DNA of 64,000 bases from Tubulanus polymorphus (Eukaryota; Animalia; Nemertea), in assembly GCF_964204645.1 (NCBI RefSeq), contig NC_134030.1, forward strand, positions 2,460,778 to 2,524,777, in the 5' to 3' direction. This document shows, one piece after another, positions 6,406 to 62,914 of this stretch. Made by a program: the position numbers and the translations under genes. Under the pieces are notes generated by a model. That model saw only the letters and a program-made list of their open reading frames with translations, was not told where the DNA came from and did no database searches. Position 1 is the stretch's first letter, and every line of letters begins with the position of its first letter.

Positions 6406-6561
6406 TAAGTCGATGAGTGACGACGTTCATGCATTCTTTATCTTCTCGATTTTCGATTGAAAAATAAATATTCATGAAATGCAGAATATTCCGTTTAAAG
6501 CGCGAACAAGTTTAATTATCAATCGTGGATACGTTGAATTACACTCTCCTCGGCCAGTTCC

Positions 6562-9222: not shown

Positions 9223-9857
9223 CAGCACCGAGTCATCACGTTGACCAGGTTTATTTACAGTCGCTGAGAACCTATTTAAGATTGAGTAAATGTCAAGAGA
9301 ACAGCGAGAGAGAGAGAAATACGCGTTAAAAGCGATGAGATATCTCAAAAAGCTTTTAGCCGGTAATACAATCTTCTCTCGACTCCATTTGGAATCGAAA
9401 GAAATGAAACAGAAAACAAAATGAACGCGGGTCGTTTCCGCACAGGAAACGAGAGAACTGTAGGGGGCTACGACCTGATGAAAGGTATCCCGCATCAAAC
9501 GTAAGACAATGTGATACAAAGATGCGTAAATGGTTTCGCAGCGTGCAGGCTGCAAAATGTCTCATCTCGCTGTGGAATCATCGAGAGACTGACGGCACGG
9601 CGGCCTAACTCTGTCAGGTTCGAATCCCTGCCGAGAGAGGATGCATATCCGCATTCAGAAATCGTCCGTTCTTTAATTAACGGTATAACTATGAATAACG
9701 ATACATGTTCTAGGTTCCTCGTTGTAAAATTTCAAGTGTTTTAATTCGATTTATCTTCATTCGTAACAATGTTACAAGTTTGAAATAGAAAAAAAAGGTC
9801 GAAAAGCAAAAAATAACAGTATTGTAACAATTTGTATTGTGACAAAAAGTCCAGCTA

Positions 9858-25700: not shown

Positions 25701-25819
25701 CGATACATGGGTTTTTATTGGTTGTCTGTTTTATCGTAATGAATCGGCTGTTGAGAAAAGATCGTGAAAAATCAGATTCATCAATCAATTCCAAACAAAT
25801 TGAATATAGGTGGAAATAA
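19701..25819 (+). CDS. MFSD4/NaGLT1-like transporter copy 2, ~468 aa; likely exons 19701-19763, 23784-24075, 24768-25819
   Basis: Exons 2 and 3 are intact and in frame. The nearer exon 1 (22229-22291) has lost its GT donor, so the upstream exon 1 with ACG|GTAGGA is the likely partner. Confidence 0.7.
19814..19944. mobile_element. 131-bp Harbinger-like MITE; second copy at 27334-27464; empty sites at ~13918 and ~35408
   Basis: TIRs GGGCCCAGTTTCAC / GTGAAACCGGGCCC with CAG/CTG flanks; absent from the other paralogous introns. Confidence 0.85.
20387..20431 (+). pseudogene. Truncated MFS exon-2 fragment at a recombination junction (also 27911-27955)
   Basis: TTTCAG|ACGGCCTTG...GATATTCTG stops abruptly and joins sequence homologous to 13234 onward (upstream of copy 1). 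Confidence 0.8.
20588..21087. mobile_element. 500-bp foldback MITE with TA target-site duplication (Tc1/mariner-like target)
   Basis: TA[CTGTCTGTCACAC ... GTGTGACAGACAG]TA with >200-bp imperfect inverted arms; empty site AAC-TA-GTG at 28111-28112 in the sister unit. Confidence 0.9.
22229..22291 (+). pseudogene. MFS exon 1 (MRCNCPRV...) with the GT donor destroyed by a deletion (also 29253-29315)
   Basis: ACG|GCAGATTT here versus ACG|GTAGGAAAATATCAGATTT in intact copies; also carries Ala>Asp and Met>Lys changes. Confidence 0.7.
22370..22905. repeat. 53-bp hairpin satellite x~10
   Basis: Same unit as 14123-15640. Confidence 0.95.
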
Positions 25820-30200: not shown

Positions 30201-33200
30201 GATTCTCAACTCGTTGAAATATTTACAGCGGTCTCAACGCTATCGAGTTCCCTGATTCTCAACTCGGTGAAATATTTACAGCAGTCCCAACTCTACCGAG
30301 TTCCCTGGTTCTCAACTCGGTGAGATATTTACAGCGGTCTCAACGCTACCGAGTTCCCTGATTCTCAACTCGGTGAAATATTTACAGCGGTCTCAACGCT
30401 ATCGAGTTCCCTGATTCTCAACTCGTTGAAATATTTACAGCGGTCTCAACGCTATCGAGTTCCCTGATTCTCAACTCGTTGAAATATTTACAGCAGTCTC
30501 AACGCTATCGAGTTCCCTGATTCTCAACTCGTTGAAATATTTACAGCGGTCTCAACGCTATCGAGTTCCCTGATTCTCAACTCGTTGAAATATTTACAGC
30601 GGTCTCAACGCTATCGAGTTCCCTGATTCTCAACTCGTTGAAATATTTACAGCGGTCTCAACGCTATCGAGTTCCCTGATTCTCAACTCGTTGAAATATT
30701 TACAGCAGTCTCAACGCTATCGAGTTCCCTGATTCTCAACTCGGTGAAATATTTACAGCAGTCTCAACGCTACAGAGTTCCCTGATTCTCAACTCGTTGA
30801 AATATTTACAGCGGTCTCAACGCTATCGAGTTCCCTGATTCTCAACTCGTTGAAATATTTACAGCAGTCTCAACGCTATCGAGTTCCCTGATTCTCAACT
30901 CGTTGAAATATTTACAGCGGTCTCAACACGCTATCGAGTTCCCTGGTTCTCAACTCGGTGAAATATTTACAGCAGTCTCAACTCTACCGAGTTCCCTGGT
31001 TCTCAACTCGTTGAAATATTTACAGCAGTCCCAACGCTACCGAGTTCCCTGGTTCTCAACTCGGTGAAATATTAAAAGCAGTCCCAAAGGTACAGAGTTC
31101 CCTGATTCTCAACTCGTTGAAATATTTACAGCGGTCTCAACGCGCTACCGAGTTCCCTGATTCTCAACTCGGTGAAATATTTACAGCAGTCTCAATTCTA
31201 CTGAGTTCCCTGGTTCTCAATTCGGTGGAATATTTACAGCAGTCTCAACGCTACCGAGTTCCCTGATTCTTAACTCGGTGAAATATTTACAGCAGTCTCA
31301 ACTCTACCGAGTTCCCTGATTCTCAACTCGGTGAAATATTTACAACAGTCTCAACGCTATCGAGTTCCCTGGTTCTCAACCCGGTAAAATATTAAAGCAG
31401 TCCCAAAGGTACAGAGTTCCCTGGTTCTCAACCCGGTGAAATATTAAAAGCAGTCCCAAAGGTTCAGAGTAAGGTGGTATCATCTATAACATTGATAGAA
31501 ATCATTATTCTGATTTCCATTTATTTAAAAAGAAATTCTACAAAGCTGTTTATCACCATATTACAATGTTATATATATATATGCATCATCGTGTCCACGT
31601 ACATCTAAAATTCGGTCTTTTTAAGAAATGAATGATAATAATTCTTCCCTCCGCGATTTTAATCCTCCGAAAGATTAGCAATTTGAATACGGTTTCAATT
31701 ACGAAACATATGTTACGTATAAAAGTATGGACTTAATATCAGTTGAATGAGGAACATTAATTAGTTCCTGAAATGATTGAATATTTTTGAAAATTATTCT
31801 AAAAATTAACGAACTTCTATTTTCGAGAGCGTGTGTCGAAAATTGACCACATGTTTTTATATCGCTCTCATGTCGCATTGTACCGTATTTGTGAAATGAA
31901 TTTTACAAAACTAAAAACCAGAGATTCACGCAGTTTGAATGTTTTGTCAAAATCCATCAAATAACCGGTGAAATATGATAAACAAGTATCAGAAATAGGA
32001 AGAAAAAAATACCCAACGATGTAGGACAAAATACCCTAATAAAATGGCGGCTGTCAACCGTAAAATGGTTTATTGAGATTAACTGGGTACAAGGCCTCGT
32101 TTAGACATTTAGATAATTACGGTTGATAAAACAGTATATCCGCGTTGAAGCGATGTAGAGAGAATCCCACAATAATAACGAAAAACTGTCCGAAAATGTA
32201 ACTGAAGCTAGAGTTTATTCAACGTTTCTACTATATCCCAATAGTAATCTTCATTATTGTGGGATTCTGTCTGCATTTAGATAATGATTGTGGGAGATTA
32301 GAAAAATTCAAATTGACATAGAATTTTGTGGTTTAATTGCAGACGGCCTTGTTGTATCTGATTGGTACTTGTGTCTACGATATTCTGCTACAAAACAACG
32401 CATCGCAGTCGCAGGAATGGATAGTGTTTCTTTCGCAAGGAATCGGTGTCGGAATGTCGGCAGTATTTTGTCTGCTTATAGTCTGGTTGACAGAGCAGTT
32501 CCTTCTTATGACGCTCTGCGCAATTCTCGTTTTAAACGGAGTGGCGACGATCGTCTGTGGCGTCAGCACGAATTTCATCCTGACCAATGTCTGGTTAGCG
32601 ATAGGTGGCGTAGCAGTCGGATCGGGAGAGGTGGGTACGTACCTTTTATTAGAATCAAATTAATCGCATGTTTGTGATTTTTGATTTGAATTAAAAACAA
32701 ATTTTTTCTTTGAATATCAATGGCCATGTCGATAATAGTAACACAGGGCACAATTCCAAGTGTGTCAAGATTTGACTCAACTCTGAAAATGAACTAATTT
32801 CTTCAATCTCATTCTATTGTGCTCTTTACAACTTTATGTGTCTTTCTACCTTCTTGTATGATTTGATACGAATAATAGAAAAGAATAGAATAAATTTCAA
32901 CTCTGAGTTAATTCTAACTCACAACTGACTGTGGAACTGGATCCTGAGTTCAGAGTTCAAACTCACAACTGTGGAACTGCGTACTCCTGTGTTCTGTGTT
33001 GAGAGTTAACTCTAACTCACAACTGTATAACTTGATCCTGGGTTCAGAGTTAACTCTAACTCGCAACTGTGGAACTGGATCCTGAGTTCAGAGTTAACTC
33101 TAACTCGCAACTGTGGAACTGGATCCTGAGTTCAGAGTTAACTCTAACTCACAACTGTTGAACTGGATCCTGAGTTCAGAGTTAACTATAACTCACAACT

Positions 33201-34322
33201 TTAGAACTGAATCCTGAGTTCAGAGTTAACTCACAACTGTGGAACTGGATCTTGACTATTGCTTGGTTTATTATCGTTTCAGTAAATGCGTTGGTTTGTG
33301 TCAGCATCTACGAGGAAAAAAGTGCGCCTATGTTGCAGTTATTGACACTGGCGACAGGTGTCGCCAATATCGGGGGACCCGCGTTTATTGCGCCGTTTCT
33401 GTGTCCAGTCGCTTACGAAATCGTCAAAGATCGCAATAATATCGAAAACTCCACACAAAAATCTAGTCTCAAAACCATCAATTCATCGATGTCAATCAGC
33501 GACGACGTTCATAATGATTTCACGGTCAGTAATCCAACAGTCCCTAACTTTATCTACCCGTTTTCGCTCTTTGCCGCCTGTTCGTTTCTCGGAGCCGTCG
33601 GGTTTTTGATCCTATTTATTTGGGAACGACGAACCGACGAGAATATATTCGACGTTGACGCCGAAAAACTGGAAACTCGACTGATACCCGAAACGAAACG
33701 TCGACAGAAGAAACCGAACGCCCGAATTTTGACTTTGATTTTATCGGGTTGTATGCAGTTTAACATCGGTGGAATTCAGAACGTTCTCGGTAATTTATTG
33801 ACAACATACGTCGTGAATTTCGGGCACGATATAAACACGAAGGAAGCCGCTCATCTCGGAACCTTGGTGCAATTGATGTTGATGTTGGCTCGATTTCTGA
33901 GCGTCCCGATTAGTTACAGATTCGGATCCTCGCCGCCGTTAGGTATCGGGATAGTATTATATCTGATCAGTAGTTTACTGCTATCGTGCGACCCGACCAA
34001 GACGCAGTTACTGTACGCGGCCTTCCTCGGTCAAGGGTTCGGATCCGGTCCTATATCACCGGCAGTATTAGGCTGGTTACCGGAGAAATATGAGATATCG
34101 AAATGGATTCACACGCTGACGATTCTCCCATTCCTCGCGGGGCATTTCGCTATGGGTCCTTTAACAGCTAAATGCATGCAGATGTTCGGTCGCTGGTCGC
34201 TAATGGTGATTTCTACGATACATGGGTTTTTATTGGTTGTCTGTTTTATCGTAATGAATCGGCTGTTGAGAAAAGATCGTGAAAAATCAGATTCATCAAT
34301 CAAGTCCAAACAAATTGAATAA
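27221..34322 (+). CDS. MFSD4/NaGLT1-like transporter copy 3, ~464 aa; likely exons 27221-27283, 32343-32634, 33283-34322
   Basis: Near-identical to copy 2; TAT>TAA shortens the C-terminus. Confidence 0.7.
29577..31470. repeat. 53-bp hairpin satellite x~35
   Basis: Same unit as 14123-15640. Confidence 0.95.
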
Positions 34323-37316: not shown

Positions 37317-39343
37317 ATGCTGTGTAACTGTCCGAGAGTGATCGCTGCCTTTTCATTGTCGATGACGTGTTTCAGTACGGTAGGAAAATACCAGATTTTA
37401 CACATTTTTATCCAAATTAATAATTATTATAAGTTGTAATGATAGAAAAAAGTTGACGAACGTTGAATTAATATCAAATTGATTTTTAAGTCAGGAAATA
37501 TTTCGTGTACAATAGACTACACGTTAGTCGTAATCCATTTGTCGGTACCACTCTCAAATCGGAGGTAAATTTACTGAAATTCATTTGAAAAACCCTTCAT
37601 TTTTCTTTATTCTCAAATTAGATGTAGCTAATTAGCAAAATATTTACAGCTGTCCCAACGCTACCGAGTAACATAGTTAATCATAAACTTTACGGGTGGA
37701 TTTAGAGGGGGCTCATGGAGCCTGGATCCCTCAATTCTTTGCCAAGATAACATGCTCAGTAAATGGTCAATACTTTCACAATCTTCTTGGGGAGCTACTG
37801 AAGATTAGGAGTATTCGAATTGACATGGAAGTGGTTTAATTTCAGACGGCCTTGTTTTATCTGATTGGTACTTGTGTCTACGATATTCTGCTACAAAACA
37901 ACGCATCGCAGTCGCAGGAATGGATAGTGTTTCTCTCGCAAGGAATCGGTGTCGGAATGTCGGCAGTATTTTGTCTGCTTATAGTCTGGTTGACAGAACA
38001 GTTCCTTCTTATGACGCTCTGCGCAATTCTCGTTTTAAACGGAGTGGCGACGATCGTCTGTGGCGTCAGTACGAATTTCATTCTGACCAATGTCTGGTTA
38101 GCGATAGGTGGCGTAGCGGTCGGATCGGCACAGCTAGGTACCTTTATCTATAATCAAATTAAACGCATATTTTGTGAGACAACTTTAATTTACAACTGTG
38201 GAACTGGATCCTGAGTTCACAGAGTTAATTGTAACACACAACTGTGGAACTGGATCTCCTTGTGTTCAGAATTAACTTACAAACTGGATCCTGACTATTG
38301 CCTGGTTTATTATCGTTTCAGTAAATACGTTGGTTTGTGTCAGCATCTACGAGGAAAAAAGTGCACCGATGTTGCAGTTAATGAACCTAGCGACATGTGT
38401 CGCCTGTATCGGGGGACCCGCGTTTATTGCGCCGTTTCTGTCTCCAGTCGCTTACGAAATCGTCAAAGATCGCAATAATATCGAAAACTCCACGCAAAAA
38501 TCTAATTCTAGTCTAAAAACCATCAATTCATCGATGTCAATCAGCGACGACGTCGATAATAATTTCACGGTCAGTAATCCAACAGTCACTAACTATATCT
38601 ACCCGTTTTCGCTCTTTGCCGCCTGTTCGTTTCTCGGAGCCGTTGGGTTTCTGATCCTATCTATTTGGGAACGACGAACCGACGAGAATATATTCGACGT
38701 TGACGCCGAAAAAGTGGAAACTCGACTGATACCCGAAACGAAACGTCGACAGAAGAAACCGAACGCCCGAATTTTGACTTTGATTTTATCGGGTTGTATG
38801 CAGTTTAACATCGGTGGAATTCAGAACGTTCTCGGTAATTTATTGACAACATACGTCGTGAATTTCGGGCACGATATAAACACGAAGGAAGCCGCTCATC
38901 TCGGCACCTTGGTGCAATTGATGTTGATGTTGGCTCGATTTCTGAGCGTCCCGATTAGTTACAGATTCGGATCCTCGCCGCCGTTAGGTATCGGGATAGT
39001 ATTATATCTGATCAGTAGTTTACTGCTATCGTGCGACACGACCAAGACGCAGTTACTGTACGCGGCCTTCCTCGGTCAAGGGTTCGGATCCGGTCCTATA
39101 TTACCGGCAGTATTAGGCTGGTTACCGGAGAAATATGAGATATCGAAATGGATTCACACGCTGACGATTCTCCCAGTCCTTGCGGGGCATTTCGCTATGG
39201 GTCCTTTAACAGCTAAATGCATGCAGACGTTCGGTCGCTGGTCGCTAATGGTGATTTCTACGATACATGGGTTTTTATTGGTTGTCTGTTTTATCGTAAT
39301 GAATCGGCTGTTGAGAAAAGATCGTGAAAAATCAGATTCATAA
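37317..39343 (+). CDS. MFSD4/NaGLT1-like transporter copy 4, ~458 aa, compact introns; exons 37317-37379, 37846-38137, 38322-39343
   Basis: All GT-AG junctions are intact and in frame (63+292+1022 nt); TCA>TAA truncates the tail. Confidence 0.85.
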
Positions 39344-48316: not shown

Positions 48317-49099
48317 ATGCCGATCGGAAACAACATCGTCGATATCGAGGAGTTGATGAAGAACTGGGCGAAAAAATGGTTCGACAAGAACGAGCGCCAC
48401 CAGGTGGAGAAAAAATACGGCAAAATACCCTTCGATAAAATGAACATCGCGATCAATCAATCGAAATTCAGTATCGAGCACGAAACGCCGCTGTACGAAA
48501 AAGAGACGGCGTTAGGGTCGTTCGCGCCACGTACGCACGTTCTCTTTAAATCAACATTCTCGAATACGACCTCTCAAGCGCAGACGTTCAATATGCATAC
48601 GGAACGACGTACGATTTCCAGCGTTAACGTTAACGTTACGGAAGGATTTTGTTTCGGGCAAGAGTTCAGTTTGACGGTCGGTCTTCCGCAGATCGACGCC
48701 GTCGAGGCGAGTATCGGACTCTACCGCGAGGTGAATTTCGAGAAAAGCGCCAACGTCAATAAGGAACAGGAAGTGACGTGGGCGGTCGACTCTCAGATCG
48801 TCGTACCCGCACAGACGACCTCTGTAGCCGAACTGGCGATCAAAGAAGACGAATACAACAGCAAGTTCAACGTGAAGAGCTTCTTCCGCGGCAAATTCTA
48901 CGTGGACTTTATCAAGGATAATGTCGAATTGGCTCGCGCTGTCGGGAGTAATTTGAAAGAGATTTTTACCAGCGATGACGGGTTCAAGGTCGATACTGAA
49001 ACGGGGGATGTTTATTTCGAAACGCACGGTGTTTGCACGTGTAGATTCGGAATCGATCAAGAAGTGAAAATAACCGAAACGAAGAATAAAGTCGATTGA
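48317..49099 (+). CDS. Aerolysin/ETX-MTX2-family (LIN-24-like) beta-pore-forming protein, 260 aa, single coding exon, no signal peptide
   Basis: VLFKSTFSNTTSQAQTFNMHTERRTISS...VTEGF, an amphipathic hairpin region, and TWAVDSQIVVPAQTTSVAELAIKE are typical of the family. Acceptor TTTTACAG ends at 48308, just before ATG 48317. Confidence 0.85.
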   Translation: MPIGNNIVDIEELMKNWAKKWFDKNERHQVEKKYGKIPFDKMNIAINQSKFSIEHETPLYEKETALGSFAPRTHVLFKSTFSNTTSQAQTFNMHTERRTISSVNVNVTEGFCFGQEFSLTVGLPQIDAVEASIGLYREVNFEKSANVNKEQEVTWAVDSQIVVPAQTTSVAELAIKEDEYNSKFNVKSFFRGKFYVDFIKDNVELARAVGSNLKEIFTSDDGFKVDTETGDVYFETHGVCTCRFGIDQEVKITETKNKVD

Positions 49100-49963
49100 A
49101 GATAAAACGGACTAAAATAGAAAAAATCGACTTGATTTTATTGTGATAATTCAATGTTCATCGTTTATAAACCATAGCATATATATTTTATTGCAAATTA
49201 ATCTTTTTGGAACTAAGATAAATGACGACTGTAAAACATATCGTGATGAAAGAATCTTCATTTGAGATTCTTGTGAGAACAAATATCAAAATCAAAAGTT
49301 TCTCGATTTCATTCTAATAAGAGTTTATGAATTGTTGATTGCTTAAAAGATACATATATTATTCAGAATATACTTTAGCGAAACGATGTTAAACATGAAA
49401 TGAAAGATAACGATATACAAACAAGACTGAAAATATATGACAAATACTCTATATACAGATTCAAGATTACTTTTAGTTCTTATTGTTAGTTGTCTCTCAT
49501 CCTGTTTGGATATTACAAGTTGCACATTCGTGGCTGAAAATGAGCTTTAAATTGGTCGCAATTTGTACGATTGGCCATGGAACCAAAACTAGGTTAAAAC
49601 TGGCCTAGAATCCCAAGTCATCAGTCATTATCGGGCCAATTACACAGTTGTGACAAGACTAGTCCTAAGTTGTTATGTTCGCTATAGAAGTAAGATGGTC
49701 TGCAATTGGTCTTACATCCAAGTCATGTCTGTGCAAATGGACCAAGGCCTCGTGCAGTACTATTCCACAGCTGTGTAGATTTATAATAGGAAAATGAGCA
49801 ATTTTCGTTCCGTAGTCGCAGTTGCCGAACAAAAAAAACTAGAAGATAGTAGCGGTGATAGAACAATTTATTCTAATTTCCTCCAATATTTATTTCGATC
49901 AAAGATGTTTATATAATACAGTTTAATGCACAGCAACAGAAACAAAGTAAGGAATCTGTAAAA

Positions 49964-51043
49964 ATGCAGTCCAATAATGTAAGCGACACATTTACCACAA
50001 TAACAAGGCAGCCTTCTCTAAGCTGGTGTCAGGGTGTCAGGAAGAGATACCCAATCCGCTGGAACTATAGATTCAGTGTATTCATGTACCTGGGTTTATA
50101 TTTACCGGCTTCGATTATAGGTATAATGCTCAATATTTTCACGATATTCGTTCTCAGAAAATTGAAAGGCGAATCTTATTTTCTCGTCAAACTTCTCGCG
50201 TTCAACGATCTTTTGTTTATGATGGCGGCTTTCGTTCTGTATCCGCTGAGAACTGCCTATATTTACACCGTGTTAGGGGATATTTTGTTCAGAATCGATG
50301 ACTGGCATTTTGGCGCTGTTTTCATCACGGTAGCCATGCCGTTTTTCTTTATATTTCAAATGACACGTAACTGGTGCACAGTTATTCTAAGTCTGGAAAG
50401 GTTGATCGTAGTTCTATTTCCAATAGCTTCACGTAAAATACCGAAAAAACTGTTGTCAACAGTTGCCTTCTCTGTAGTTTCACTTCTTGCATTTTGTGGA
50501 TTTTTCATTCACTTTATTCCTATAAAGATTATTGGTAAACTGGGCTGCCCGGATACATGGCCTTACATCACAATGCTCAAGACTTGGGTGTCGTATTTGC
50601 CATGGCAAATCCAACAAATATGGCGTTATATATTTGCCGACATTTACCTGTACATGTATGGAACCGTTCTAATCCCTATTTGTAGCTTAGTTCTCATTAA
50701 TTCAATCCTCATTTCTTCGGTGTTAATTCGTAAAATCACCCGACGTTCAGATTTTTTTCAGACCGATCCCTCGTCGAACAAGGAACTGAAAGTTTTAAAA
50801 ATGGTTCTTACAGTTGTAGCAGTGTACATCATCTGCGAGGGTTTCGGTTTCGTCGATCGTATGTCGTATAAACGTTTCTTCAAAATCTACATCGACCCTC
50901 TGGTTCTGCGTAAAATTTCCCTGGCATTTTCTATCATCGATTCGTCGGTAAATTTTTTCATATATTGTTTGACTAACGACAAATTCAAGAAAGTAGCGAT
51001 GATAATCACGTTGAAAAATCGAAAATATTTCATTTCAAAATAA
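49964..51043 (+). CDS. Intronless class A GPCR, FMRFamide-receptor-like/Srw-type, copy 1 (359 aa)
   Basis: 7 TM segments; LNIFTIFVL (TM1), LAFNDLL (TM2), WCTVILSLERLIVVLFP (DRY variant), DSSVNFFIYCL (NPxxY variant). Confidence 0.92.
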   Translation: MQSNNVSDTFTTITRQPSLSWCQGVRKRYPIRWNYRFSVFMYLGLYLPASIIGIMLNIFTIFVLRKLKGESYFLVKLLAFNDLLFMMAAFVLYPLRTAYIYTVLGDILFRIDDWHFGAVFITVAMPFFFIFQMTRNWCTVILSLERLIVVLFPIASRKIPKKLLSTVAFSVVSLLAFCGFFIHFIPIKIIGKLGCPDTWPYITMLKTWVSYLPWQIQQIWRYIFADIYLYMYGTVLIPICSLVLINSILISSVLIRKITRRSDFFQTDPSSNKELKVLKMVLTVVAVYIICEGFGFVDRMSYKRFFKIYIDPLVLRKISLAFSIIDSSVNFFIYCLTNDKFKKVAMIITLKNRKYFISK

Positions 51044-51561
51044 TATACCGGTATCAGAACTCTGTGAGTTTCTCCGGGTCCCTAGCCCTGGGGTTGATGC
51101 TCGATATCGATGTTTCCCAGGAAGAGAGCGTAAATAGATTAGTTCATGGATTCGCTGTCAGGGGCAGCACATGACGGTCGATAATATCTTACACGGCGGC
51201 GCGACATTTCCTAATACCCCGATTTTAAAACAAAAACAAACCAATTAAATATTCATCTTGTTTGTTTTTTGTTTTATTATTTTCGTTTGATATGAGTTAA
51301 TTTATTTAATACAGATATATTATTATCATCGAATATATGTGGCAATTAATTTAAGTTAGCAAACATCTTCGCTTACTCGAATGAATTGTGACCAATGATT
51401 TAATTTGAGTTTCAAGATGGACATATGTTTTCAAATGCAATATGGTTTCAAGATTCGTGTTTCAAAAATGAGTAAAGTTCGATTTGAACGGGATCCTATT
51501 GAGCAGTATATTCTGGAATATGCCGTCCATATCAAATTCTCGATTAAAAATAACGTAAATG

Positions 51562-54500
51562 TTAAGTTTGCAACTTTTTTTCTTCCAAGTCTGCGATAGA
51601 AGGTCCGATCCTGTCGAAATCAATTTCTCCATAAACGGCCGGTTCAACATCCGCCCCGATAATGATTTCCGGTCGTTGCTGCTGCGCGGAATCAGGTTCC
51701 GGCGCGCGTACTGAAACGAAATCTGCATAGATGGCGCCTTCGTCGTTGATTTGCTGGAAAAGAAACAGACGCGAGTTCCTTCGTTACCGTTCAACCATCC
51801 AAAGTCTCTCGTGCATAATTTTGATGAGGAATTTACGAGTCTTAAACAAAATGGATCTCTTTTGATTGACGATTAGTTAGTCTCTCGAGTTCTCATCAAA
51901 GTTGTGCACGATTATCCAAGATGGCCGCCGATGAGAGGATTTGTATTCACACATTAATTAAAATGAAACCCTTACAACGTTCAGTTCACTGCATTCTTTC
52001 TCTGCCGGTGAATCCGGATCGACTTCGATGCTCACTAAACGCGACTCCTTCTTCTCCGCATTCGTCGCTAAAATAACACAAATCAATCTAACTTTACATC
52101 AAGAAACTTTGAATAGACATTTTGATATTGAGGAAGATATTGATTTCTATAGACAATTTATATTGACTTTCTATAATTCAATTGAAAAAAAACTATGTTA
52201 CTGTGTGGGAGATACAGGATTTCAGAGAGCTGCAGGGGTTCGGGTGGAGAAATGGCCTCTGTTTACACTTTGTGATGAATAATCAAAAAATAAAACCCAC
52301 TCCAATTGCGCATTGCTCCTTATACCACTATAGCAACAAACATTTATAACACATTTACCCAATTATTCAATAATCATATCAATCATGAGAAGGTGGAAAA
52401 ACTTGAAAAAGGGCAAGTTTCTGGTGGGCCCTGAATCACAACCCACCCGCCCTCTTACCCCTCCATGACTATATGTTAAGAAACAACTTGAAGAGAGACG
52501 TTTCTGCTCAATTATTAAAGCAGGAATCACCGATAGGATTGAGTCGAAACGTCACTACTCTCCCGTAATTTTTCGATAATATTGCGGGTGATTTCCTTCG
52601 TTCGATAAAGAATATACTGACGTTTATCGTTCAACATTTTGCCGTCCTGTTTCTTTCGTTTTCTCGTGAAAAAGCAACCAACGGCAATGGCCATCAAACA
52701 GCAGCACAGTACACCTGCGATAATAGCTCCCGTAACTGAATTACTGAATCTTCTATCTCCATCTTTCATAGTTCCACCTATTCAAAGTAAACAACATGAT
52801 ACAAAAATAAATTATTATCCGCTAAATCGATTTACGATTAACTGAATTATATGAACGACGACAATTTTTATGAATGAGTGACAACTACAGTCAAAGATCG
52901 TTGGGACCAGGAAAAGTTAATTATCTTTAATTCTCTAAATCAGAAAAAGGAAAATTGCTTTTTTGAAGCTTTCGTACATTTATTCTCGATCAGAAAAATA
53001 TCTTATTGCTAAGCGAGAGAGATCAATGGTGTTACGACGGACTTAAGCGGAATATAATCTGTATATGTCGAAATCGGTGAACTGTTTTTGTGTCGCCTGA
53101 CGCGTCCGATGGTATTTGTGGTGTCGAACCCGGGACGACTGGAACACCTCGCCAGTAACCACAACTGAACCTGTGTCGATTATGTAATTTGAATGGAACA
53201 TGAATTCAATCTTAAGCATTTTCTTTCTGCTTTTGTCTTACCTATTGTTGTTGTTGCTGATGTGGTTGTTGCTGTTGTACCTACAGATTTTTTGTGCTGA
53301 GTCGAACCAGAGACGGCGTCGTGAGGTGCAGTCGATGTTAGTTCAGTAGTGTCACCTAAAATCAAGCAGGTCACACGAACAAAGGTCATATTTTTGCATT
53401 GATTCATTTACATAGTTCAAACAATCGGAAACAAATTTTTCACAATTATGTTATTCAAACGGAACACGAATTCAAGCTTAGTTCAAATACAAGCATTGAA
53501 AAGTCGAAACGTATCTTGTATGTATACCTGTTGTAGCCACTGTTGTCATTATTGCTGTTGTGTTGACAGAATTTGTTTCCTCGCCGTGTACTATTGGCTG
53601 GTTGGCGTTCGCGGAATCATCGTTCACTGTCGAAAATGAACATTTTAACATATCGAATCTACTTCAAAATGTATTCGCTAAAGGATAAGTTGAGCTTAGA
53701 TCATCTTTGAAATATAGTATATTTCATTTCTAATTTTATTTATGACATTTGAGGTTTTAATTACGTATATTTGAGAAAATATCAACAAACCCGTTAACTT
53801 TTTTTCTCTACTTATGCCGACTGCATCACCATCATCATTTTTCCCCTCACAAATCCATTTATCGAACGCATAGTTCCCATTTACTCCAAATATTGTGAGG
53901 ATTACATTCGATCGTCCAGTTTTATTTTCATCAGTACCCTCGATGATGTCTACCCTCGATGGTGTCTGATCTGATACTCCAGTTTCATTACAGTCGATAC
54001 TTTCTTCATCAACCGAGGAACCGGATGTCACATCTTCATTATTACATGTTATTTTGATTGTTCCATTTTTTTGAATAAAGTTAACCTCCTTAGTTTTGGC
54101 GATATCTATTGAACCACAAGTAAAGCTGACTGTGTCTCCAACATTTACAGTTTCCGGGTTTATTTTGAGCTCATATGTACTCCACGCACAATCAACTGTT
54201 TCAACTGGAAAATTCAAAAAGATTCTTTTCCGATCTCCCGATTCCGGAACTAGTTCTAAATACATGGATTTTTTCTGATACTTACTGAGAATAAAAAGAC
54301 GGATCAAAGTAGAAATAAATGCATCAATCTAAAACACAAAATTTACAAAAACTGTACCCTGTTGCCGACGGTAGAAGTTTTATGGCTTTGTCGGTTGTCG
54401 CTATCCCACTTCTGATAGTCGGACGCAGAGTTTGGGTTCAAAACTAAATTAGCCTAAAAAAACATTTTTTTTTTTCAATTTTTTAGCTTTGTATTTCGTC

Positions 54501-54730
54501 ATTTGTTTACATTGAAAACATGTAAAACAATTGATATACCGGTAATCGAATACTTTTATTTCGATTCAAATTCCTTAAACGTGATAGGTAGGAGTGTAAT
54601 CGGTAAATCCTAGATCGTTTATCTGGCCCGGATCCCTAACGGCAGATTGTCCATTCAGGTTATATGAAAGCAGGGAAGTGTGATGTCTCATCACACTTCC
54701 GTGATGAAAGCAATTAAAACTCACCATCAT
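51562..54730 (-). CDS. Type I membrane Ig-domain receptor with mucin stalk and two ITIM/ITSM-like motifs, copy 1, ~371 aa; exons 54730-54725, 54328-54286, 54204-53791, 53626-53528, 53355-53242, 52777-52622, 52067-51976, 51753-51562
   Basis: All junctions are GT-AG and phase-compatible. Signal peptide MMIDAFISTLIRLFILIETVDC; Ig-like exon (VNVGDTVSFTC ... VILTI ... KWICEG); Thr/Ser-rich exons; TM GAIIAGVLCCCLMAIAVGCFF followed by RKRKK; tail with GAIYADF and PAVYGEI. Confidence 0.8.
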
Positions 54731-54939
54731 TTCAACCTTGGAGTAATCAGGTGGATTACTCCAAGTTTCAACTGAGTTCCTCAAACATCTAGCAGCTATA
54801 ATAGACTACAGCGAGACAGCGTGGAGTGATATTTATTTAGACTGATTTTTAGTTCCTATTTCCATAAATAGCTACTGGACCAGGAATATTGACCAGATAC
54901 GGGTATATAACAAATGATATAACAATTGACGCTGAATGA

Positions 54940-55010
54940 ATAAAGCGGAAGTCATGTAAATAAAAGAATCTAACGGTATAATCGCAGTTCTAGGTTTATG
55001 ACGTCATTGC
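54940..55010. promoter_or_regulatory. Candidate bidirectional promoter between IgR (minus) and GPCR (plus); duplicate at ~60780-60850
   Basis: ETS CGGAAGT at 54946-54952 and palindromic CRE ATGACGTCAT at 54998-55007, within the ~490 bp that separate the two start codons. Confidence 0.5.
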
Positions 55011-55220
55011 GTGAGCTGAAATTCGCCAGTGACTTCACAATCATGTATCAGATCATTGAAAAAATATTCCATTCATTTGCGCGTGGACAAAATCTAATGT
55101 AGTAAACCAGCATTTTTTTCATGTGTTCGTATTTTAAGTAAATTATATACTGAATGATAAATGGAATATGTTTATAAATGATGCAAGATAATGAAAATAG
55201 AAACAAACTATATCTGTAAA

Positions 55221-56297
55221 ATGCAGTCGAATAATGTAAGCGACACATTTACCACAATAACGCGGCAGCCTTCTCTAAGCTGGTGTCAGGGTGTCAGGAA
55301 GAGATACCCAATCCGTTGGAACTATAGATTCAGTGTATTCATGTACCTGGGTTTATATTTACCGGCTTCAATTCTAGGTATAATACTCAATATTTTCACG
55401 ATATTCGTTCTCAGAAAATTGAAAGGCGAATCTTATTTTCTCGTCAAACTTCTCGCGTTCAACGATCTTTTGTTTATGATGGCGGCTTTCGTTCTGTATC
55501 CGCTGAGAACTGCCTATATTTACACCGTGTTAGGGGATATTTTGTTCAGAATCGATGACTGGCATTTTGGCGCTGTTTTCATCACGGTAGCCATGCCGTT
55601 CTTCTTTATATTTCAAATGACACGTAACTGGTGCACAGTTATTCTGAGTCTGGAAAGGTTGATCGTAGTTCTATTTCCAATAGCTTCACGTAAAATACCG
55701 AAAAAACTGTTGTCAACAGTTGCCTTCTCTGTAGTAACACTTCTTGCATTTTGTGGGTATTTGATTTACTTTATTCCAATAAAGAATATTGGTAAACTGG
55801 GCTGCCCGGATAGATGGCCTTACATCACAGTGACTACATCTTGGGCGTCGTATTTGTCATGGGATGTTCGTCATCACTGGGGACATATTGCCGACGTTTA
55901 CCTGTACATGTATGGAACCGTTCTAATCCCTATTTGTAGTTTGGTTCTCATCAATTCAATCCTCATTTCTTCGGTGTTAATTCGTAAAATCATCCGACGT
56001 TCAGATTTTTTTCAGACCGATCCCTCGTCGAACAAGGAACTGAAAGTTTTAAAAATGGTTTTTACAGTTGTAGCAGTGTACATCGTCTGCGAGGGTTTCG
56101 GTTTCGTCGATCGTATGAAATACATAAACGTTTTCACAATAAGAATAGATTCGATGGTTCTGCGTAAAATTTCCCTGGCATTTTCTATCATCGATTCGTC
56201 GGTAAATTTTTTCATATATTGTTTGACTAACGACAAATTCAAGAAAGTAGCGATGGAAATCACGTTGAAAAATCGAAAATATTTCATTTCAAAATGA
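55221..56297 (+). CDS. Intronless class A GPCR copy 2 (358 aa)
   Basis: Paralog of 49964-51043; ATG 55221 aligns with the starts of the other copies. Confidence 0.92.
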   Translation: MQSNNVSDTFTTITRQPSLSWCQGVRKRYPIRWNYRFSVFMYLGLYLPASILGIILNIFTIFVLRKLKGESYFLVKLLAFNDLLFMMAAFVLYPLRTAYIYTVLGDILFRIDDWHFGAVFITVAMPFFFIFQMTRNWCTVILSLERLIVVLFPIASRKIPKKLLSTVAFSVVTLLAFCGYLIYFIPIKNIGKLGCPDRWPYITVTTSWASYLSWDVRHHWGHIADVYLYMYGTVLIPICSLVLINSILISSVLIRKIIRRSDFFQTDPSSNKELKVLKMVFTVVAVYIVCEGFGFVDRMKYINVFTIRIDSMVLRKISLAFSIIDSSVNFFIYCLTNDKFKKVAMEITLKNRKYFISK

Positions 56298-56815
56298 TAT
56301 ACCGGTATCAGAACTCTGTGAGTTTCTCCGGGTCCCTGGCCCTGGGGTTGATGCTCGATATCGATGTTTCCCAGGAAGAGAGCGTAAATAGATTAGTTCA
56401 TGGATTCGCTGTCAGGGGCAGCACATGACGGTCGATAATATCTTACACGGCGGCGCGACATTTCCTAATACCCCGATTTTAAAACAAAAACAAACCAATT
56501 AAATATTCATCTTGTTTGTTTTTTGTTTTATTATTTTCGTTTGATATGAGTTAATTTATTTAATACAGATATATTATTATCATCGAATATATGTGGCAAT
56601 TAATTTAAGTTAGCAAACATCTTCGCTTACTCGAATGAATTGTGACCAATGATTTAATTCAAGTTTCAAGATGGACATATGTTTTCAAATGCAATATGGT
56701 TTCAAGATTCGTGTTTCAAAAATGAGTAAAGTTCGATTTGAACGGGATCCTATTGAGCAGTATATTCTGGAATATGCAGTCCATATCAAATTCTCGATTA
56801 AAAATAACGTAAATG

Positions 56816-59800
56816 TTAAGTTTGCAACTTTTTTTCTTCCAAGTCCGCGATAGAAGGTCCGATCCTGTCGAAATCAATTTCTCCATAAACGGCCGGTTCA
56901 ACATCCGCCCCGATAATGATTTCCGGTCGTTGCTGCTGCGCGGAATCAGGTTCCGGCGCGCGTACTGAAACGAAATCTGCATAGATGGCGCCTTCGTCGT
57001 TGATTTGCTGGAAAAGAAACAGACGCGAGTTCCTTCGTTACCGTTCAACCATCCAGTCTCTCGTGCATAATTTTGATGAGGAATTTACGAGTCTTAAACA
57101 AAATGGTTCTCTTTTGATTGACGATTAGTTAGTCTCTCGAGTTCTCATCAAAGTTGTGCACGATTATCCAAGATGGCCGCCGATGAGAGGATTTGTATTC
57201 ACACATTAATTAAAATGAAACCCTTACAACGTTCAGTTCACTGCATTCTTTCTCTGCCGGTGAATCCGGATCGACTTCGATGCTCACTAAACGCGACTCC
57301 TTCTTCTCCGCATTCGTCGCTAAAATAACACAAATCAATCTAACTTTACATCAAGAAACTTTGAATAGACATTTTGATATTGAGGAAGATATTGATTTCT
57401 ATAGACAATTATAGTGACTTTCTATAATTCAATTGAAAAAAAACGATGTTACTGTGTGGGAGATACAGGATTTCAGAGAGCTGCAGGGGTTCGGGTGGAG
57501 AAATGGCCTCTGTTTACACTTTGTGATGAATAATCAAAAAATAAAACCCATTCCAATTGCGCATTGCTCCTTATACCACTATAGCAACAAACATTTATAA
57601 CACATTTACCCAATTATTCAATAATCATATCAATCATGAGAAGGTGGAAAAACTTGAAAAAGGGCAAGTTTCTGGTGGGCCCTGAATCACAACCCACCCG
57701 CCCTCTTACCCCTCCATGACTATATGTTAAGAAACAACTTGAAGAGAGACGTTTCTACTCAATTACGAGAACCGGAATCACCGATAGGATTGAGTCGAAA
57801 CGTCACTACTCTCCCGTAATTTTTCGATAATATTGTGGGTGATTTTCTTCGTTCGATAAAGAATATACTGACGTTTATCGTTCAACATTTTGCCGTCCTG
57901 TTTCTTTCGTTTTCTCGTGAAAAAGAAACCAACGGCAATGGCCATCAAAAAGCAGCACAGTACACCTGCGATAATAGCTCCCGTAACTGAATTACTGAAT
58001 CTTCTATCTCCATCTTTCATAGTTCCACCTATTCAAAGTAAACAACATGATACAAAAATAAATTATTATTGATCGCTAAATCGATTTACGATTAACTGAA
58101 TTATATGAACGACGACATTTTTTATGAATGAGTGACAACTACAGTCAAAGATCGTTGGGACCAGGAAAAGTTAATTATCTTTAATTCTCTCAATCAGAAA
58201 AAGGAAAATTGCTTTTTTGAAGCTTTCGTACATTTATTCTCGATCAGAAAAATATCTTATTGCTAAGCGAGAGAGATCAATGGTGTTACGACGGACTTAA
58301 GCGGAATATAATCTGTATATGTCGAAATCGGTGAACTGTTTTTGTGTCGCCTGACACGTCCGATGGTATTTGTGGTGTCGAACCCGGGACGACTGGAACA
58401 CCTCGCCAGTAACCGCAACTGAACCTGTCTCGATTAAGTAATTTGAATGGAACATGAATTCAATCTTAAGCATTTTCTTTCTGCTTTTGTCTTACCTATT
58501 GTTGTTGTTGCTGATGTCGGCGTTAGTTCAGTAGTGTCACCTAAAATCAAGCAGGTCACACGAACAAAGGTCATATTTTTGCATTGATTCATTTACATAG
58601 TTCAAACAATCGGAAACGAATTTTTCACAATTATGTTATTCAAACGGAACACGAATTCAAGCTTAGTTCAAATACAAGCATTGAAAAGTCGAAACGTATC
58701 TTGTTTGTATACCTGCTGTAGCCACTGTTGTCGTTATTGCTGTTGTGTTGACAGAATTTGTTTCCTCGCCTCGTACTATTGGCTGGTTGGCGTTCGCGGA
58801 ATCATCGTTCACTGTCGAAAATGAACATTTTAACATATCGAATCTACTTCAAAATGTATTCGCTAAAGGATAAGTTGAGCTTAGATCATCTTTGAAATAT
58901 AGTATATTTCATTTCTAATTTTATTTATGACATTTGAGGTTTTAATTACGTATATTTGAGAAAATATCAACAAACCCGTTAACTTTTTTTCTGTACTTTT
59001 GCCGACTAGATCACTATCATTTCCCCCCTCACAAATCCATTTATCGGACGTATAGCTATCTTAAGCATTTTCTTTCTGCTTTTGTCTTACCTATTGTTGT
59101 TGTTGTTGCTGATGTGGTTGTTGCTGTTGTGCCTACAGATTTTTTGTGCTGAGTCGAACCAGACCCGGCGTCGTGAGGTGTAGCGCTTTCATCAGCTGCA
59201 GTCGGCGTTAGTTCAGTAGTGTCACCTAAAATCAAGCAGGTCACACGAACAAAGGTCATATTTTTGCAATGATTCATTTACATAGTTCAAACAATCGGAA
59301 ACGAATTTTTCACAATTATGTTATTTAAACGGAACACGAATTCAAGTTTAGTTCAAATACAAGCATTGAAACGTCGAAACGTATCTTTTATATATACCTG
59401 TTGTAGCCACTGTTGTCGTTATTGCTGTTGTGCTGACAGAATTTGCTTCGTTCGCGGAATCATCGTTCACTGTCGAAAATGAACATTTTAACATATCGAA
59501 TCTACTTCAAAATGTATTCGCTAAAGGATAAGTTGAGCTTAGATCATCTTTGAAATATAGTATATTTCATTTCTAATTTTATTTATGACATTTGAGGTTT
59601 TAATTACGTATATTTGAGAAAATATCAACAAACCCGTTAACTGTTTTTCTCTACTTTTGTCGACTGGATCACCATCATTCCTCCCCTCACAAATCCATTT
59701 ATCGGACGTAGAGTTCTTAATTACTCCCGATATTGTGAGGATTACATTCGATCGTCCAGTTTTATTTTCATAAGTACCCTTGATGCTGTCTACCCTCGAT

Positions 59801-60567
59801 GGTGTCTGATCTGATACTCCAGTTTCATATTTACAGACGATACTTACTTCATCACCCGAGGAATCGGATGTCACATCTTCAGTATTACATGTTATTTTGA
59901 TTGTTCCATTTTTTTGAATAAAGTGAACCTCCTTAGTTTTGGCGATATCTATTGAACCACAAGTAAAGCTGACTGTGTCTCCAACATTTACAGTTTTCGG
60001 GTTTATTTTGAGCTCATATTCACTCCACGCACAATTAATCATTTCAACTGGAAAATTCAAAAAGATTCTTTTCCGATCTCCCGATTCCGGAACTAGTTCT
60101 AAATACATGGATTTTTTCTGATACTTACTGAGAATAAAAAGACGGATCAAAGTAGAAATAAATGCATCAATCTAAAACACAAAATTTACAAAAACTGTAC
60201 CCTGTTGCCGACGGTAGAAGTTTTATGGCTTTGTCGGTTGTCGCTATCCCACTTCTGATAGTCGGACGCAGAGTTTGGGTTCAAAACTAAATTAGCCTAA
60301 AAACATTTTTTTTTTCAATTTTTTAGCTTTGTATTTCGTCATTTGTTTACATTGAAAACATGTAAAACAATTGATATACCGGTAATCGAATACTTTTATT
60401 TCGATTCAAATTCCTTAAACGTGATAGGTAGGAGTGTAATCGGTAATTCCTAGATCGTTAATCTGGCCCGGATCCCTAACGGCAGATTGTCCATTCAGGC
60501 TATATGAAAGCAGGGAAGTGTGATGTCTCATCACACTTCCGTGATGAAAGCAATTAAAACTCACCAT
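56816..60567 (-). CDS. Ig-mucin-TM-ITIM-like receptor copy 2, ~416 aa with duplicated stalk exons; exons 60567-60565, 60171-60129, 60047-59634, 59469-59398, 59225-59091, 58811-58713, 58540-58496, 58028-57873, 57319-57228, 57007-56816
   Basis: Same splice sites as copy 1; all four stalk exons are symmetric phase 1-1 and open. Confidence 0.75.
58976..59056 (-). pseudogene. 3' remnant of a third, different Ig-domain exon (YTSDKWICEGGNDSDLVGKSTEKKLT)
   Basis: Homologous to the end of the Ig exons, keeps the donor, lacks the 5' part; differs from both intact copies. Confidence 0.8.
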
Positions 60568-61059
60568 TATTTCAACCTTGGAGTAATCAGGTGGATTACT
60601 CCAAGTTTCAACTGAGTTCCTCAAACATCTAGCAGCTATAATAGACTACAGCGAGACAGCGTGGAGTGATATTTATTTAGACTGATTTTTAGTTCCTATT
60701 TCCATAAATAGCTACTGGACCAGGAATATTGGCCAGATACGGGTATATAACAAATGATATAACAATTGGCGATGAATGAATAAAGCGGAAGTCATGTAAA
60801 TAAAAGAATCTAACGGTATAATCGCAGTTCTAGGTTTATGACGTCATTGCGTGAGCTGAAATTCGCCAGTGACTTCACAATCATGTATCAGATATCAGTG
60901 AAAAAATATTCCATTCATTTGCGCGTGGACAAAATCTAATGTAGTAAACCAGCATTTTTTTCATGTGTTCGTATTTTAAGTAAATAACTGAATGATAAAT
61001 GGAATATGTTTATAAATGATGCAAGATAATGAAAATAGAAACAAACTATATCTGTAAAA

Positions 61060-62136
61060 ATGCAGTCGAGTAATGTAAGCGACACATTTACCACAATAAC
61101 AAGGCAGCCTTCTCTAAGCTGGTGTCAGGGTGTCAGGAAGAGATACCCAATCCGTTGGAACTATAGATTCAGTGTATTCATGTACCTGGGTTTATATTTA
61201 CCGGCTTCGATTCTAGGTATAATACTCAATATTTTCACGATATTCGTTCTCAGAAAATTGAAAGGCGAATCTTATTTTCTCGTCAAACTTCTCGCGTTCA
61301 ACGATCTTTTGTTTATGATGGCGGCTTTCGTTCTGTATCCGCTGAGAACTGCCTATATTTACACCGTGTTAGGGGATATTTTGTTCAGAATCGATGACTG
61401 GCATTTTGGCGCTGTTTTCATCACGGTAGCCATGCCGTTTTTCTTTATATTTCAAATGACACGTAACTGGTGCACAGTTATTCTGAGTCTGGAAAGGTTG
61501 ATCGTAGTTCTATTTCCAATAGCTTCACGTAAAATACCGAAAAAACTGTTGTCAACAGTTGCCTTCTCTGTAGTAACACTTCTTGCATTTTGTGGGTATT
61601 TGATTTACTTTATTCCAATAAAGAATATTGGTAAACTGGGCTGCCCGGATAGATGGCCTTACATCACAGTGACTACATCTTGGGCGTCGTATTTGTCATG
61701 GGATGTTCGTCATCACTGGGGACATATTGCCGACGTTTACCTGTACATGTATGGAACCGTTCTAATCCCTATTTGTAGTTTGGTTCTCATCAATTCAATC
61801 CTCATTTCTTCGGTGTTAATTCGTAAAATCATCCGACGTTCAGATTTTTTTCAGACCGATCCCTCGTCGAACAAGGAACTGAAAGTTTTAAAAATGGTTT
61901 TTACAGTTGTAGCAGTGTACATCGTCTGCGAGGGTTTCGGTTTCGTCGATCGTATGAAATACATAAACGTTTTCACAATAAGAATAGATTCGATGGTTCT
62001 GCGTAAAATTTCCCTGGCATTTTCTATCATCGATTCGTCGGTAAATTTTTTCATATATTGTTTGACAAACGACAAATTCAAGAAAGTAGCGATGATAATC
62101 ACGTTGAAAAATCGAAAATATTTCATTTCAAAATAA
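61060..62136 (+). CDS. Intronless class A GPCR copy 3 (358 aa)
   Basis: Only 2 aa differences from copy 2; homology to the cassette ends near 62281. Confidence 0.92.
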   Translation: MQSSNVSDTFTTITRQPSLSWCQGVRKRYPIRWNYRFSVFMYLGLYLPASILGIILNIFTIFVLRKLKGESYFLVKLLAFNDLLFMMAAFVLYPLRTAYIYTVLGDILFRIDDWHFGAVFITVAMPFFFIFQMTRNWCTVILSLERLIVVLFPIASRKIPKKLLSTVAFSVVTLLAFCGYLIYFIPIKNIGKLGCPDRWPYITVTTSWASYLSWDVRHHWGHIADVYLYMYGTVLIPICSLVLINSILISSVLIRKIIRRSDFFQTDPSSNKELKVLKMVFTVVAVYIVCEGFGFVDRMKYINVFTIRIDSMVLRKISLAFSIIDSSVNFFIYCLTNDKFKKVAMIITLKNRKYFISK

Positions 62137-62914
62137 TATACCGGTATCAGAACTCTGTGAGTTTCTCCGGGTCCCTAGCCCTGGGGTTGATGCTCGATAT
62201 CGATGTTTCCCAGGAAGAGAGCGTAAATAGATTAGTTCATAGATTCGCTGTCAGGGGCAGCACATGACGGTCGATAATATCATGTTGAAGCCGGGAATGA
62301 AACTAATTCGTACCAAAAATAAACCGTATTAGAATCGTGTACAGTGTTTCCTTGTAGGTTTGAGGCCTGGATAGTCGGCGCGAGTTTTCGTGGATCGAGT
62401 AACCTCTGATCCAGGAGGCCATATCATCCCGGCACAAATTAGTTCACATATTCCCCGCCAATGATTTATTTAGGGGCGGCACTAGACAGCAAAAGCCTAC
62501 GACATTCCGTATATCTACTGTGGCATGCGAGTACTCACGCAATCGCATTTTTACATATAATTTTACACCTCTGCACATTTTTGTGTTTTTGTGCTGTCTA
62601 GAATTTCGTTTGTCTCTTTATTGGACACACCTGATATAAAGAGTGTTATGATAGTAACAAAGTATCAATAAAGTTTACTTTGACATTGAATTGTTACTGT
62701 GGCAAGCGAGTAATCTTTAGGCGTCCCATTACATCATCGATAAACAATTTTGCCGTACTCGAGATATTTAGGCCATTATGTGTTTTTTGACAGAGGTTCT
62801 CTGTTTAATACACTTTTAATCTCAAAGGTAGTTTGTTTGTTGGTTTCTCTCCGAATATGTTAAAGAACAGTTTGATTTCATTGCGCTAGAAAAGACGGAG
62901 CTGTCGATTCCAGA

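Follow-up and report, generated by a model that had tools for sequence, protein, structure and literature searches.

Candidate diversifying selection on the immunoglobulin-like exon of two tandem receptor genes in the nemertean Tubulanus polymorphus

In a 64,000-nucleotide stretch (C6:2460778-2524777, here referred to as the window) of the genome of the palaeonemertean ribbon worm Tubulanus polymorphus, two young tandem paralogues differ markedly in the amino acids encoded by a single exon. The genes, LOC141907438 (gene A) and LOC141906896 (gene B), each encode a signal peptide, one probable V-like immunoglobulin (Ig) domain, a Thr-rich stalk, a transmembrane segment, and a tail. In a pairwise alignment of the two Ig exons, 26 of the 136 aligned codons differ (19%), and all 26 differences change the amino acid, leaving 81% amino acid identity. 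At the nucleotide level, 30 of 411 aligned bases differ (7.3%), and the exons also carry two compensating 3-bp indels, one per copy. We hold with moderate confidence that this pattern reflects protein-level diversifying selection on the ectodomain of the two paralogues, amid concerted evolution. A preliminary description of this DNA, made from its letters alone, had placed the two 414-nt minus-strand exons exactly, at 53791-54204 and 59634-60047. It had called them about 20% divergent, a figure that holds for the protein and not for the nucleotides, and its count of about 26 substitutions plus two compensating one-codon indels agrees with the 26 codon replacements (30 base substitutions) and single indel per copy.

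The genes lie in a tandem repeat (window bases 49954-62281), where they alternate with G protein-coupled receptor (GPCR) genes in the order GPCR-A (plus strand), receptor gene A (minus), GPCR-B (plus), receptor gene B (minus), and GPCR-C (plus). Gene A was placed by tblastn, and its splice sites and intron phases were read; the splice-derived model equals the RefSeq protein P0002 (371 amino acids [aa]) residue for residue, with the Ig exon corresponding to residues 18 to 154. The features on which the analysis draws are as follows.

51562..54730, minus strand: gene A coding span, 8 coding exons
54725-54730, minus strand: gene A ATG(ATG) start exon, 3 or 6 nt
54286-54328, minus strand: gene A signal-peptide exon
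53791..54204, minus strand: gene A Ig-like (V-frame) exon, 414 nt, phase 1 at both ends, AG acceptor, GT donor
53528-53626 and 53242-53355, minus strand: gene A Thr-rich stalk exons
52622-52777, minus strand: gene A transmembrane exon
51976-52067 and 51562-51753, minus strand: gene A tail exons
56816..60567, minus strand: gene B coding span, plan as in gene A but with four stalk exons
59634..60047, minus strand: gene B Ig-like exon, 414 nt, phase 1 at both ends, AG acceptor, GT donor; present in RefSeq models P0006 and P0007
49964..51043, plus strand: GPCR-A, intronless, rhodopsin type, Pfam 7tm_1, 91% identical to GPCR-B
55221..56297, plus strand: GPCR-B, intronless, rhodopsin-type seven-transmembrane receptor
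61060..62136, plus strand: GPCR-C, partner of GPCR-B in the duplicated segment with the Ig exons; internal control

Divergence and selection in the Ig exon

As the main control, we used the duplicated segment of about 2.8 kb that bears both Ig exons (53606-56442 versus 59449-62281). Differences between its two copies are distributed as follows.

Noncoding DNA: 12/1296 differences, 0.93%
GPCR-B versus GPCR-C: 9/1077 differences, 0.84%
Signal-peptide exon: 0/43 differences, 0%
Ig exon: 30/411 differences, 7.3%

The excess in the Ig exon is significant against noncoding DNA (Fisher p 7e-11), against either control, noncoding or GPCR (p ~1e-10), and against the 38/3025 differences over the whole repeat unit (p 2e-11). 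Both immediate flanks are invariant.

53606..53790: intron directly downstream of Ig exon A, identical to 59449-59633 in B (185 bases) and to the flank of a relic Ig exon described below
54205..54460: two introns and the signal-peptide exon between them, upstream of Ig exon A; matches 60048-60303 in B without a difference (256 bases)

The transmembrane exon and two tail exons together hold 2 nonsynonymous changes and 1 synonymous change in 432 nt, and the final 109 residues of the tail are identical in A and B. Over the remaining exons of the gene pair, 474 scored sites contain 2 nonsynonymous (Nd) and 1 synonymous (Sd) differences. The near-identical introns and the few tail-exon differences reported in the preliminary description are thus confirmed, with 0 differences in 185 plus 256 bases and 3 in 432 nt.

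Within the exon, the method of Nei and Gojobori counts 87 synonymous and 321 nonsynonymous sites, with Sd 2 and Nd 29, giving a synonymous divergence (dS) of 0.023 and a nonsynonymous divergence (dN) of 0.096. Across methods, dN is 0.096-0.10 and dS 0.012-0.023, so that dS lies 4 to 8 times below dN; both synonymous steps fall within doubly changed codons. The Nei-Gojobori counts put the ratio dN/dS (omega) at 4.1, and pairwise GY94 maximum likelihood puts it at 8.5-10.3; under the latter, a likelihood-ratio test rejects omega = 1 (2dlnL 7.7-9.8, p 0.002-0.006). The excess of dN over dS is also significant by Fisher's test (p 0.022). In a neutral simulation, 30 mutations were placed on the exon, with or without five tandem double hits. 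Under it, 5 to 7 codons with a silent change only are expected and none is observed (P 0.0005-0.004), and this absence stays significant when the five tandem double mutations are allowed. The silent divergence of the exon matches that of the neutral controls, which is 0.009-0.013 for noncoding DNA and 0.021 for dS between GPCR-B and GPCR-C. In sum, dN is significantly greater than dS and silent divergence is no higher than in the controls, two marks of positive (diversifying) selection. Positive selection for amino acid change, as the preliminary description had proposed, is supported by this result: dS (0.012-0.023) does not approach dN (0.096).

A nonadaptive account would make the Ig exon an old divergent segment whose flanks have been homogenized by gene conversion. 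Such segments do occur in this repeat. GPCR-B and GPCR-C differ little (dS 0.021, dN 0.0036), whereas GPCR-A differs from GPCR-B at a dS of 0.12 with an overall omega of 0.44, and the proportion of synonymous differences (pS) between them ranges by segment from 0 to 0.51. Relative to B and C, codons 166-235 of GPCR-A have pS 0.19 and a proportion of nonsynonymous differences (pN) of 0.15, and codons 291-315 have pS 0.51 and pN 0.20. As read from the alignments, these patches are old sequence within young flanks, the signature of a conversion mosaic and not of selection, and they show that old segments can sit inside young flanks here. Noncoding divergence is likewise patchy, averaging about 1% but falling to 0% beside the Ig exon and rising to 3.5-4.7% in the stalk intron, and the 0 differences in 441 nt of immediate flank fall below the local noncoding rate (P ~0.017). 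The silent sites of the Ig exon nevertheless point the other way. Two silent steps in 87 sites are compatible with an exon age of pS <= 0.04 and reject one of pS >= 0.09 (P 0.016) or 0.19 (P 1e-5). Moreover, dN exceeds dS within the exon whatever the history of the flanks, a result that gene conversion cannot yield. The 26 changed codons lie about 16 bp apart, and conversion could not have cleaned the silent sites between them yet spared the replacements. We therefore regard an old, conversion-sheltered exon as unlikely. The repeat would then contain two kinds of divergence island, a selected Ig exon with low dS and old GPCR-A patches that escaped conversion and have high dS, and silent sites can tell the two apart.

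If diversifying selection is the correct explanation, the two tandem paralogues would encode a lineage-restricted type I membrane receptor, and since their last duplication or homogenization (about 1% neutral divergence) selection would have driven or kept apart the amino acids of the Ig domain alone. The domain would have taken 29 nonsynonymous and 2 synonymous steps, losing one N-glycosylation sequon and gaining another, while the signaling tail, the membrane anchor, and the residues that define the fold were held fixed. Gene conversion and unequal crossing-over would keep the remainder of the repeat uniform, sharpening the contrast. The likely outcome would be two receptors of differing binding specificity that feed into one signaling output. 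The variable residues may be exposed and bind a ligand, and the selection, which the preliminary description likened to host-pathogen or allorecognition arms races, may come from a pathogen, from a conspecific, or from the partner gamete.

Domain fold and the distribution of replacements

The domain does not reach the Pfam Ig thresholds: copy B scores at best 17.4 bits with Ig_3 (cut-off 30) and 16.6 bits with ig (cut-off 21.8), and copy A scores lower. Several other lines point to an Ig fold. Using phmmer, we found matches to two proteins built of Pfam-confirmed Ig repeats (E 4e-7 and 1.7e-4), in which only the N-terminal third aligns, and hhalign returned a probability of 91% over residues 13-44 (strands A'-B-C). 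The best sequence match in the PDB is a V-lambda domain at a nonsignificant E of 0.08. V-set domains have eight canonical residues, Gly16, Cys23, Trp41, Arg75, Leu89, Asp98, Tyr102, and Cys104 (PMC9546547). A manual register places G22, C29, F42, R83, L102, D114, W116, and C118 at these positions, all invariant between the copies. This register departs from the canon in having Phe for Trp (F42) and Trp for Tyr (W116), and its C29-C118 spacing of 89 residues is longer than usual; the exon as a whole exceeds a typical V domain by 25-40 residues. Two rival registers pair C53 with C118 (Pfam Ig_3) and C29 with C71 (MAFFT).

AlphaFold2 models are all-beta but of low confidence, with a predicted local distance difference test score (pLDDT) of 36.5 from the single sequence and 40.5 from a 16-row alignment. 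Foldseek returned no match at E <= 0.001; its list is dominated by V-set domains, a weak and partly circular result given that Ig domains were in the input alignment. The best structural matches of an Atlas model of the protein (pLDDT 0.49) are Ig clusters of the LILR, KIR, and LAIR families, at template modeling scores of 0.58-0.61. Taken together, these independent and individually weak lines make an Ig-like V-frame fold probable, with an ambiguous strand register. The conserved cysteines and core strands of the preliminary description are accordingly upheld for all five cysteines and for the V-frame positions, which do not vary between A and B, and less firmly for the assignment of strands.

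The replacements alter the chemistry of the domain. Charge changes in 13 of the 26, among them all of the E/K, G/D, D/V, G/K, and I/K exchanges that had been listed before, and residue class changes in 21. The net charge of the domain is -12 in A and -4 in B, a shift of 8 units. Sequons are present at N72 in A only and at N111 in B only. Along the domain, the replacements are distributed as follows.

Residues 1-17: 5 replacements
Residues 18-54 (A'-B-C-C' block): 1 replacement in 37 residues, versus 25 in 100 elsewhere (p 0.0025)
Residues 55-73 (acidic segment, also one indel): 6 replacements
Residues 74-104: 3 replacements
Residues 105-129: 9 replacements
Residues 130-137: 2 replacements

The variable sites are thus spread over several separate segments, and they show a slight, nonsignificant depletion in the low-confidence predicted strands.

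The relic exon, gene structure, and further alternatives

One intron of gene B holds a relic of a third Ig exon, which borders on an internal duplication of that gene.

58975..59060, minus strand: third Ig exon relic, last ~28 codons with intact donor; profile match E 4.4e-4

The relic is in neither annotated isoform of gene B, and splicing it in from the upstream phase-1 donor leads to a stop codon. In a three-way alignment of this stretch, changes private to A (5), to B (4), and to the relic (4) are interleaved. Read in the old frame, 12 of these 13 alter the amino acid, and two codons are in three different states across A, B, and the relic. The adjoining 213 nt are identical in all three copies. 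The private changes of the relic (4/84 nt) are in excess over those in its own flank (2/478; p 0.005). The relic's excess of nonsynonymous change suggests, at the level of sequence, that the same regime acted on more than two lineages. We favor a history in which gene B arose by fusion of two genes that had each been complete, and the relic is a formerly live exon under a like regime; if so, three lineages diversified.

The relic also bears on whether the Ig exon is simply prone to mutation in the germline, as a hot spot or through targeted mutagenesis, so that its excess of change would be mutational and not selected. A sequence outside both isoforms that has accumulated private changes beside 213 nt of identical DNA is what a hot spot would produce, and the many changes in adjacent pairs or triplets, together with the codons in three states, fit as well. 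A hot spot alone, though, predicts the 5 to 7 silent-only codons that are missing and an omega of 1, which is rejected, and it would not spare the fold-defining residues and a 37-residue block. The genome holds no template-like extra copy, and by inspection there is no adenine-specific or simple deaminase-like spectrum. Mutagenesis of the kind driven by diversity-generating retroelements was dropped for lack of a template copy and of an adenine-specific pattern. We judge a purely mutational origin to be distinctly improbable. A mixed version, in which exon-focused mutation or templated change diversifies the germline and selection merely filters the products, would explain why the relic is as diverged as the live exons beside identical neighboring DNA; we give it a slim chance.

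The structure of the two genes bears on two other alternatives. The internal duplication of gene B spans about 0.6 kb (58510-59064 versus 59195-59720) and doubles the stalk exons, so that B has four where A has two; indels of 18 and 27 nt further distinguish the stalks. Exon duplication and length change thus drive the evolution of the mucin-like stalk, which is rich in Thr and probably O-glycosylated. Under one alternative, A and B would be two haplotypes of one locus misassembled in tandem, and their differences would be allelic. Heterozygosity in marine invertebrates is expected to reach the ~1% seen here in noncoding DNA, which fits this view. Against it, the window has no assembly gaps, and RefSeq lists two separate loci, both with complete models. 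In addition, there are three GPCR copies, with a dS of 0.12 between GPCR-A and GPCR-B, and the receptor genes differ in exon number and in the internal duplication. A haplotype artifact is therefore quite unlikely, and were it true, selection would still be required, in the form of allelic hypervariability.

Under the other alternative, one copy would be drifting toward a pseudogene under relaxed constraint. The start of gene A (54725-54730) reads ATGATG and that of gene B (60565-60570) ATAATG, so that B lacks the first of two ATGs. RefSeq gives gene B two isoforms, P0007 (416 aa) and P0006 (399 aa). A T2M replacement in the Ig exon of B (60042-60040) creates an in-frame ATG that RefSeq takes as the start of isoform X2 (399 aa), which would be without a signal peptide. 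While these features could be read as early decay, relaxed constraint can raise omega no further than 1 and divergence no further than the neutral ~1%, and the observed nonsynonymous divergence is 7-10 times neutral. Reading frames, cysteines, and splice sites are intact in both genes, and the tail is perfectly conserved. Decay of one copy is very hard to credit.

Several observations weigh against diversifying selection itself. The test rests on a single pair without an outgroup and on only ~87 synonymous sites, and the exon-only p values of 0.002-0.02 are significant, not overwhelming. Five codons have two changes each, several of them adjacent, and multinucleotide mutations inflate omega. 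Simple selection on A and B after the duplication also leaves unexplained why the relic, although apparently noncoding, has diverged as far as the two live exons. The uneven noncoding divergence and the overly identical immediate flanks belong here too: the locus, as it reads, is a conversion mosaic whose flanks are no clean clock, and since those flanks have been homogenized they probably sharpen the contrast between exon and flank, which is to that extent exaggerated. The Ig exons of two genes that share the tail (C6:5.18 Mb and C6:23.04 Mb) have no specific similarity to this one and offer no outgroup by which to polarize the 26 changes.

Relatives, comparable receptor systems, and other features of the window

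In a profile search of the 268-Mb T. polymorphus genome, the only relatives of the Ig exon were the two exons themselves and the 84-nt fragment, and the transmembrane exon had no other relatives. No protein of another organism matched the Ig exon specifically, the whole protein, or the tail, generic Ig-repeat proteins aside. A word search with the exon was empty, and searches with the whole protein and with the tail each returned the two genes alone. A low-complexity, bacterial-type match from an exhaustive library search was regarded as spurious.

The tail is more widely shared. It contains the motifs A-I-Y-A-D-F and A-V-Y-G-E-I, and the two tyrosines lie 32 residues apart. The looser Yxx-hydrophobic pattern is all that either motif fits. 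Neither the immunoreceptor tyrosine-based inhibitory motif (ITIM; [I/L/V/S]xYxx[I/V/L], as defined in PMC9546547) nor the corresponding activation motif (ITAM; YxxL/I-x6-12-YxxL/I) is matched, as position -2 is Ala in both and position +3 is Phe in the first. The last tail exon (51565-51753, minus strand) has distant relatives at at least 9 other loci, on contigs C6 and C8, which define a shared module of D-G-x-I-Y-A, ~30 residues, and Y-G-E-[ILV]-D-F; some of these relatives read T-I-Y-A-R-L. Some tail-sharing loci have weak CUB-like matches upstream instead of Ig exons. The gene at C6:5.18 Mb (C6:5176200-5186199) has three upstream Ig exons, two of them above the Pfam threshold (V-set 33 bits, Ig_2 38 bits). 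This immunoglobulin superfamily (IgSF) gene lies ~9 kb from the nearest outside paralogues of the window GPCRs (C6:5193756-5196295), which are 64-66% identical, and the adjacency of GPCR and IgSF receptor may have been duplicated as a block. The GPCR family itself has expanded to at least 113 scored intronless genes in the genome (1321 first-look candidates). Within a nemertean set of receptors that have a tyrosine-motif tail in common, the gene pair is most plausibly the youngest.

Comparable patterns are known from other recognition systems. In the major histocompatibility complex (MHC), the peptide-binding exons of class I and class II genes show dN > dS of the type described by Hughes and Nei, and intron homogenization is known for HLA class I and DRB1. 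The likeness is that a single recognition-domain exon forms an island of divergence with dN > dS while recombination or conversion keeps neighboring introns uniform. However, the MHC case concerns alleles of a polymorphic locus and another fold region, whereas here two paralogues of one assembly are compared, and they have no homology to MHC genes. Tandem opsin genes offer a second parallel: the conversion mosaics of primate red and green opsins have near-identical introns around divergent exons, as in GPCR-A. The exons of opsin-type mosaics, though, differ through old changes and have diverged strongly at silent sites, whereas the silent sites of the Ig exon have diverged no more than its flanks.

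Receptors of the vertebrate Ig-mucin (TIM) family begin with an Ig domain at the N terminus, followed by a stalk rich in Ser and Thr, a membrane-spanning segment, and a tail that bears tyrosines. The receptor pair has a like layout, and the rapidly evolving leukocyte receptor families KIR, LILR, LAIR, and CD300 show birth-and-death evolution and ectodomain-focused change. In contrast to those families, with which the pair shares no detectable sequence homology, the two receptors belong to the phylum Nemertea, and their identical tails mean that they are not an activating/inhibitory pair.

In the cnidarian Hydractinia, Alr1, Alr2, and other members of the Alr family are single-pass receptors whose membrane-distal V-like Ig domain falls below Pfam thresholds, is hypervariable, and determines specificity (PMC9546547, PMC8282982). 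The receptor pair resembles them in its tandem duplication, its tail tyrosine motifs, and a subthreshold, probably V-like distal domain as the variable part. The Alr genes, however, form a 41-gene complex encoding two or three Ig-like domains, with demonstrated homophilic allelic recognition (PMC9546547, PMC8282982), whereas the nemertean locus comprises two genes and a relic, with a single domain and no canonical ITIM or ITAM. We detected no homology to known allorecognition genes and no match outside Tubulanus besides generic Ig repeats. Nemerteans of the genus Lineus reject grafts with specificity and memory (PMC2248247), and our literature search found no recognition receptor described for Nemertea. 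The pair is a small, testable candidate: an orphan IgSF receptor whose outer domain has diverged at 4-10 times the silent rate while its signaling tail has been frozen. Should the pattern be merely ordinary post-duplication divergence, its importance would be limited to the annotation of a poorly studied phylum.

Elsewhere in the window, an intronless 260-aa open reading frame (ORF; 48317-49096, plus strand) just upstream of the receptor/GPCR repeat matches Pfam ETX_MTX2, the family of aerolysin-like pore-forming toxins (32.4 bits; cut-off 22). NCBI lists its product among the proteins of T. polymorphus, and it may be a nemertean toxin or defense gene. The region 13500-39600 contains four tandem ORFs resembling Major Facilitator Superfamily transporters (17185-18324, 24737-25816, 33252-34319, and 38330-39340), among which lie minisatellites with a 53-bp period (14123-15636, 22369-22911, and 29576-31470). 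Tandem arrays at 6561-7117 and 8681-9223, with periods of ~44 bp and ~18 bp, overlap long open frames that have no Pfam match. A 692-bp direct repeat (1-691 versus 3752-4443) is 99.6% identical, and two inverted-repeat pairs of ~200-230 bp are 85-95% identical (10302-10533 versus 11646-11417 and 20584-20786 versus 21091-20889); the direct repeat and the inverted pairs may be transposon ends.

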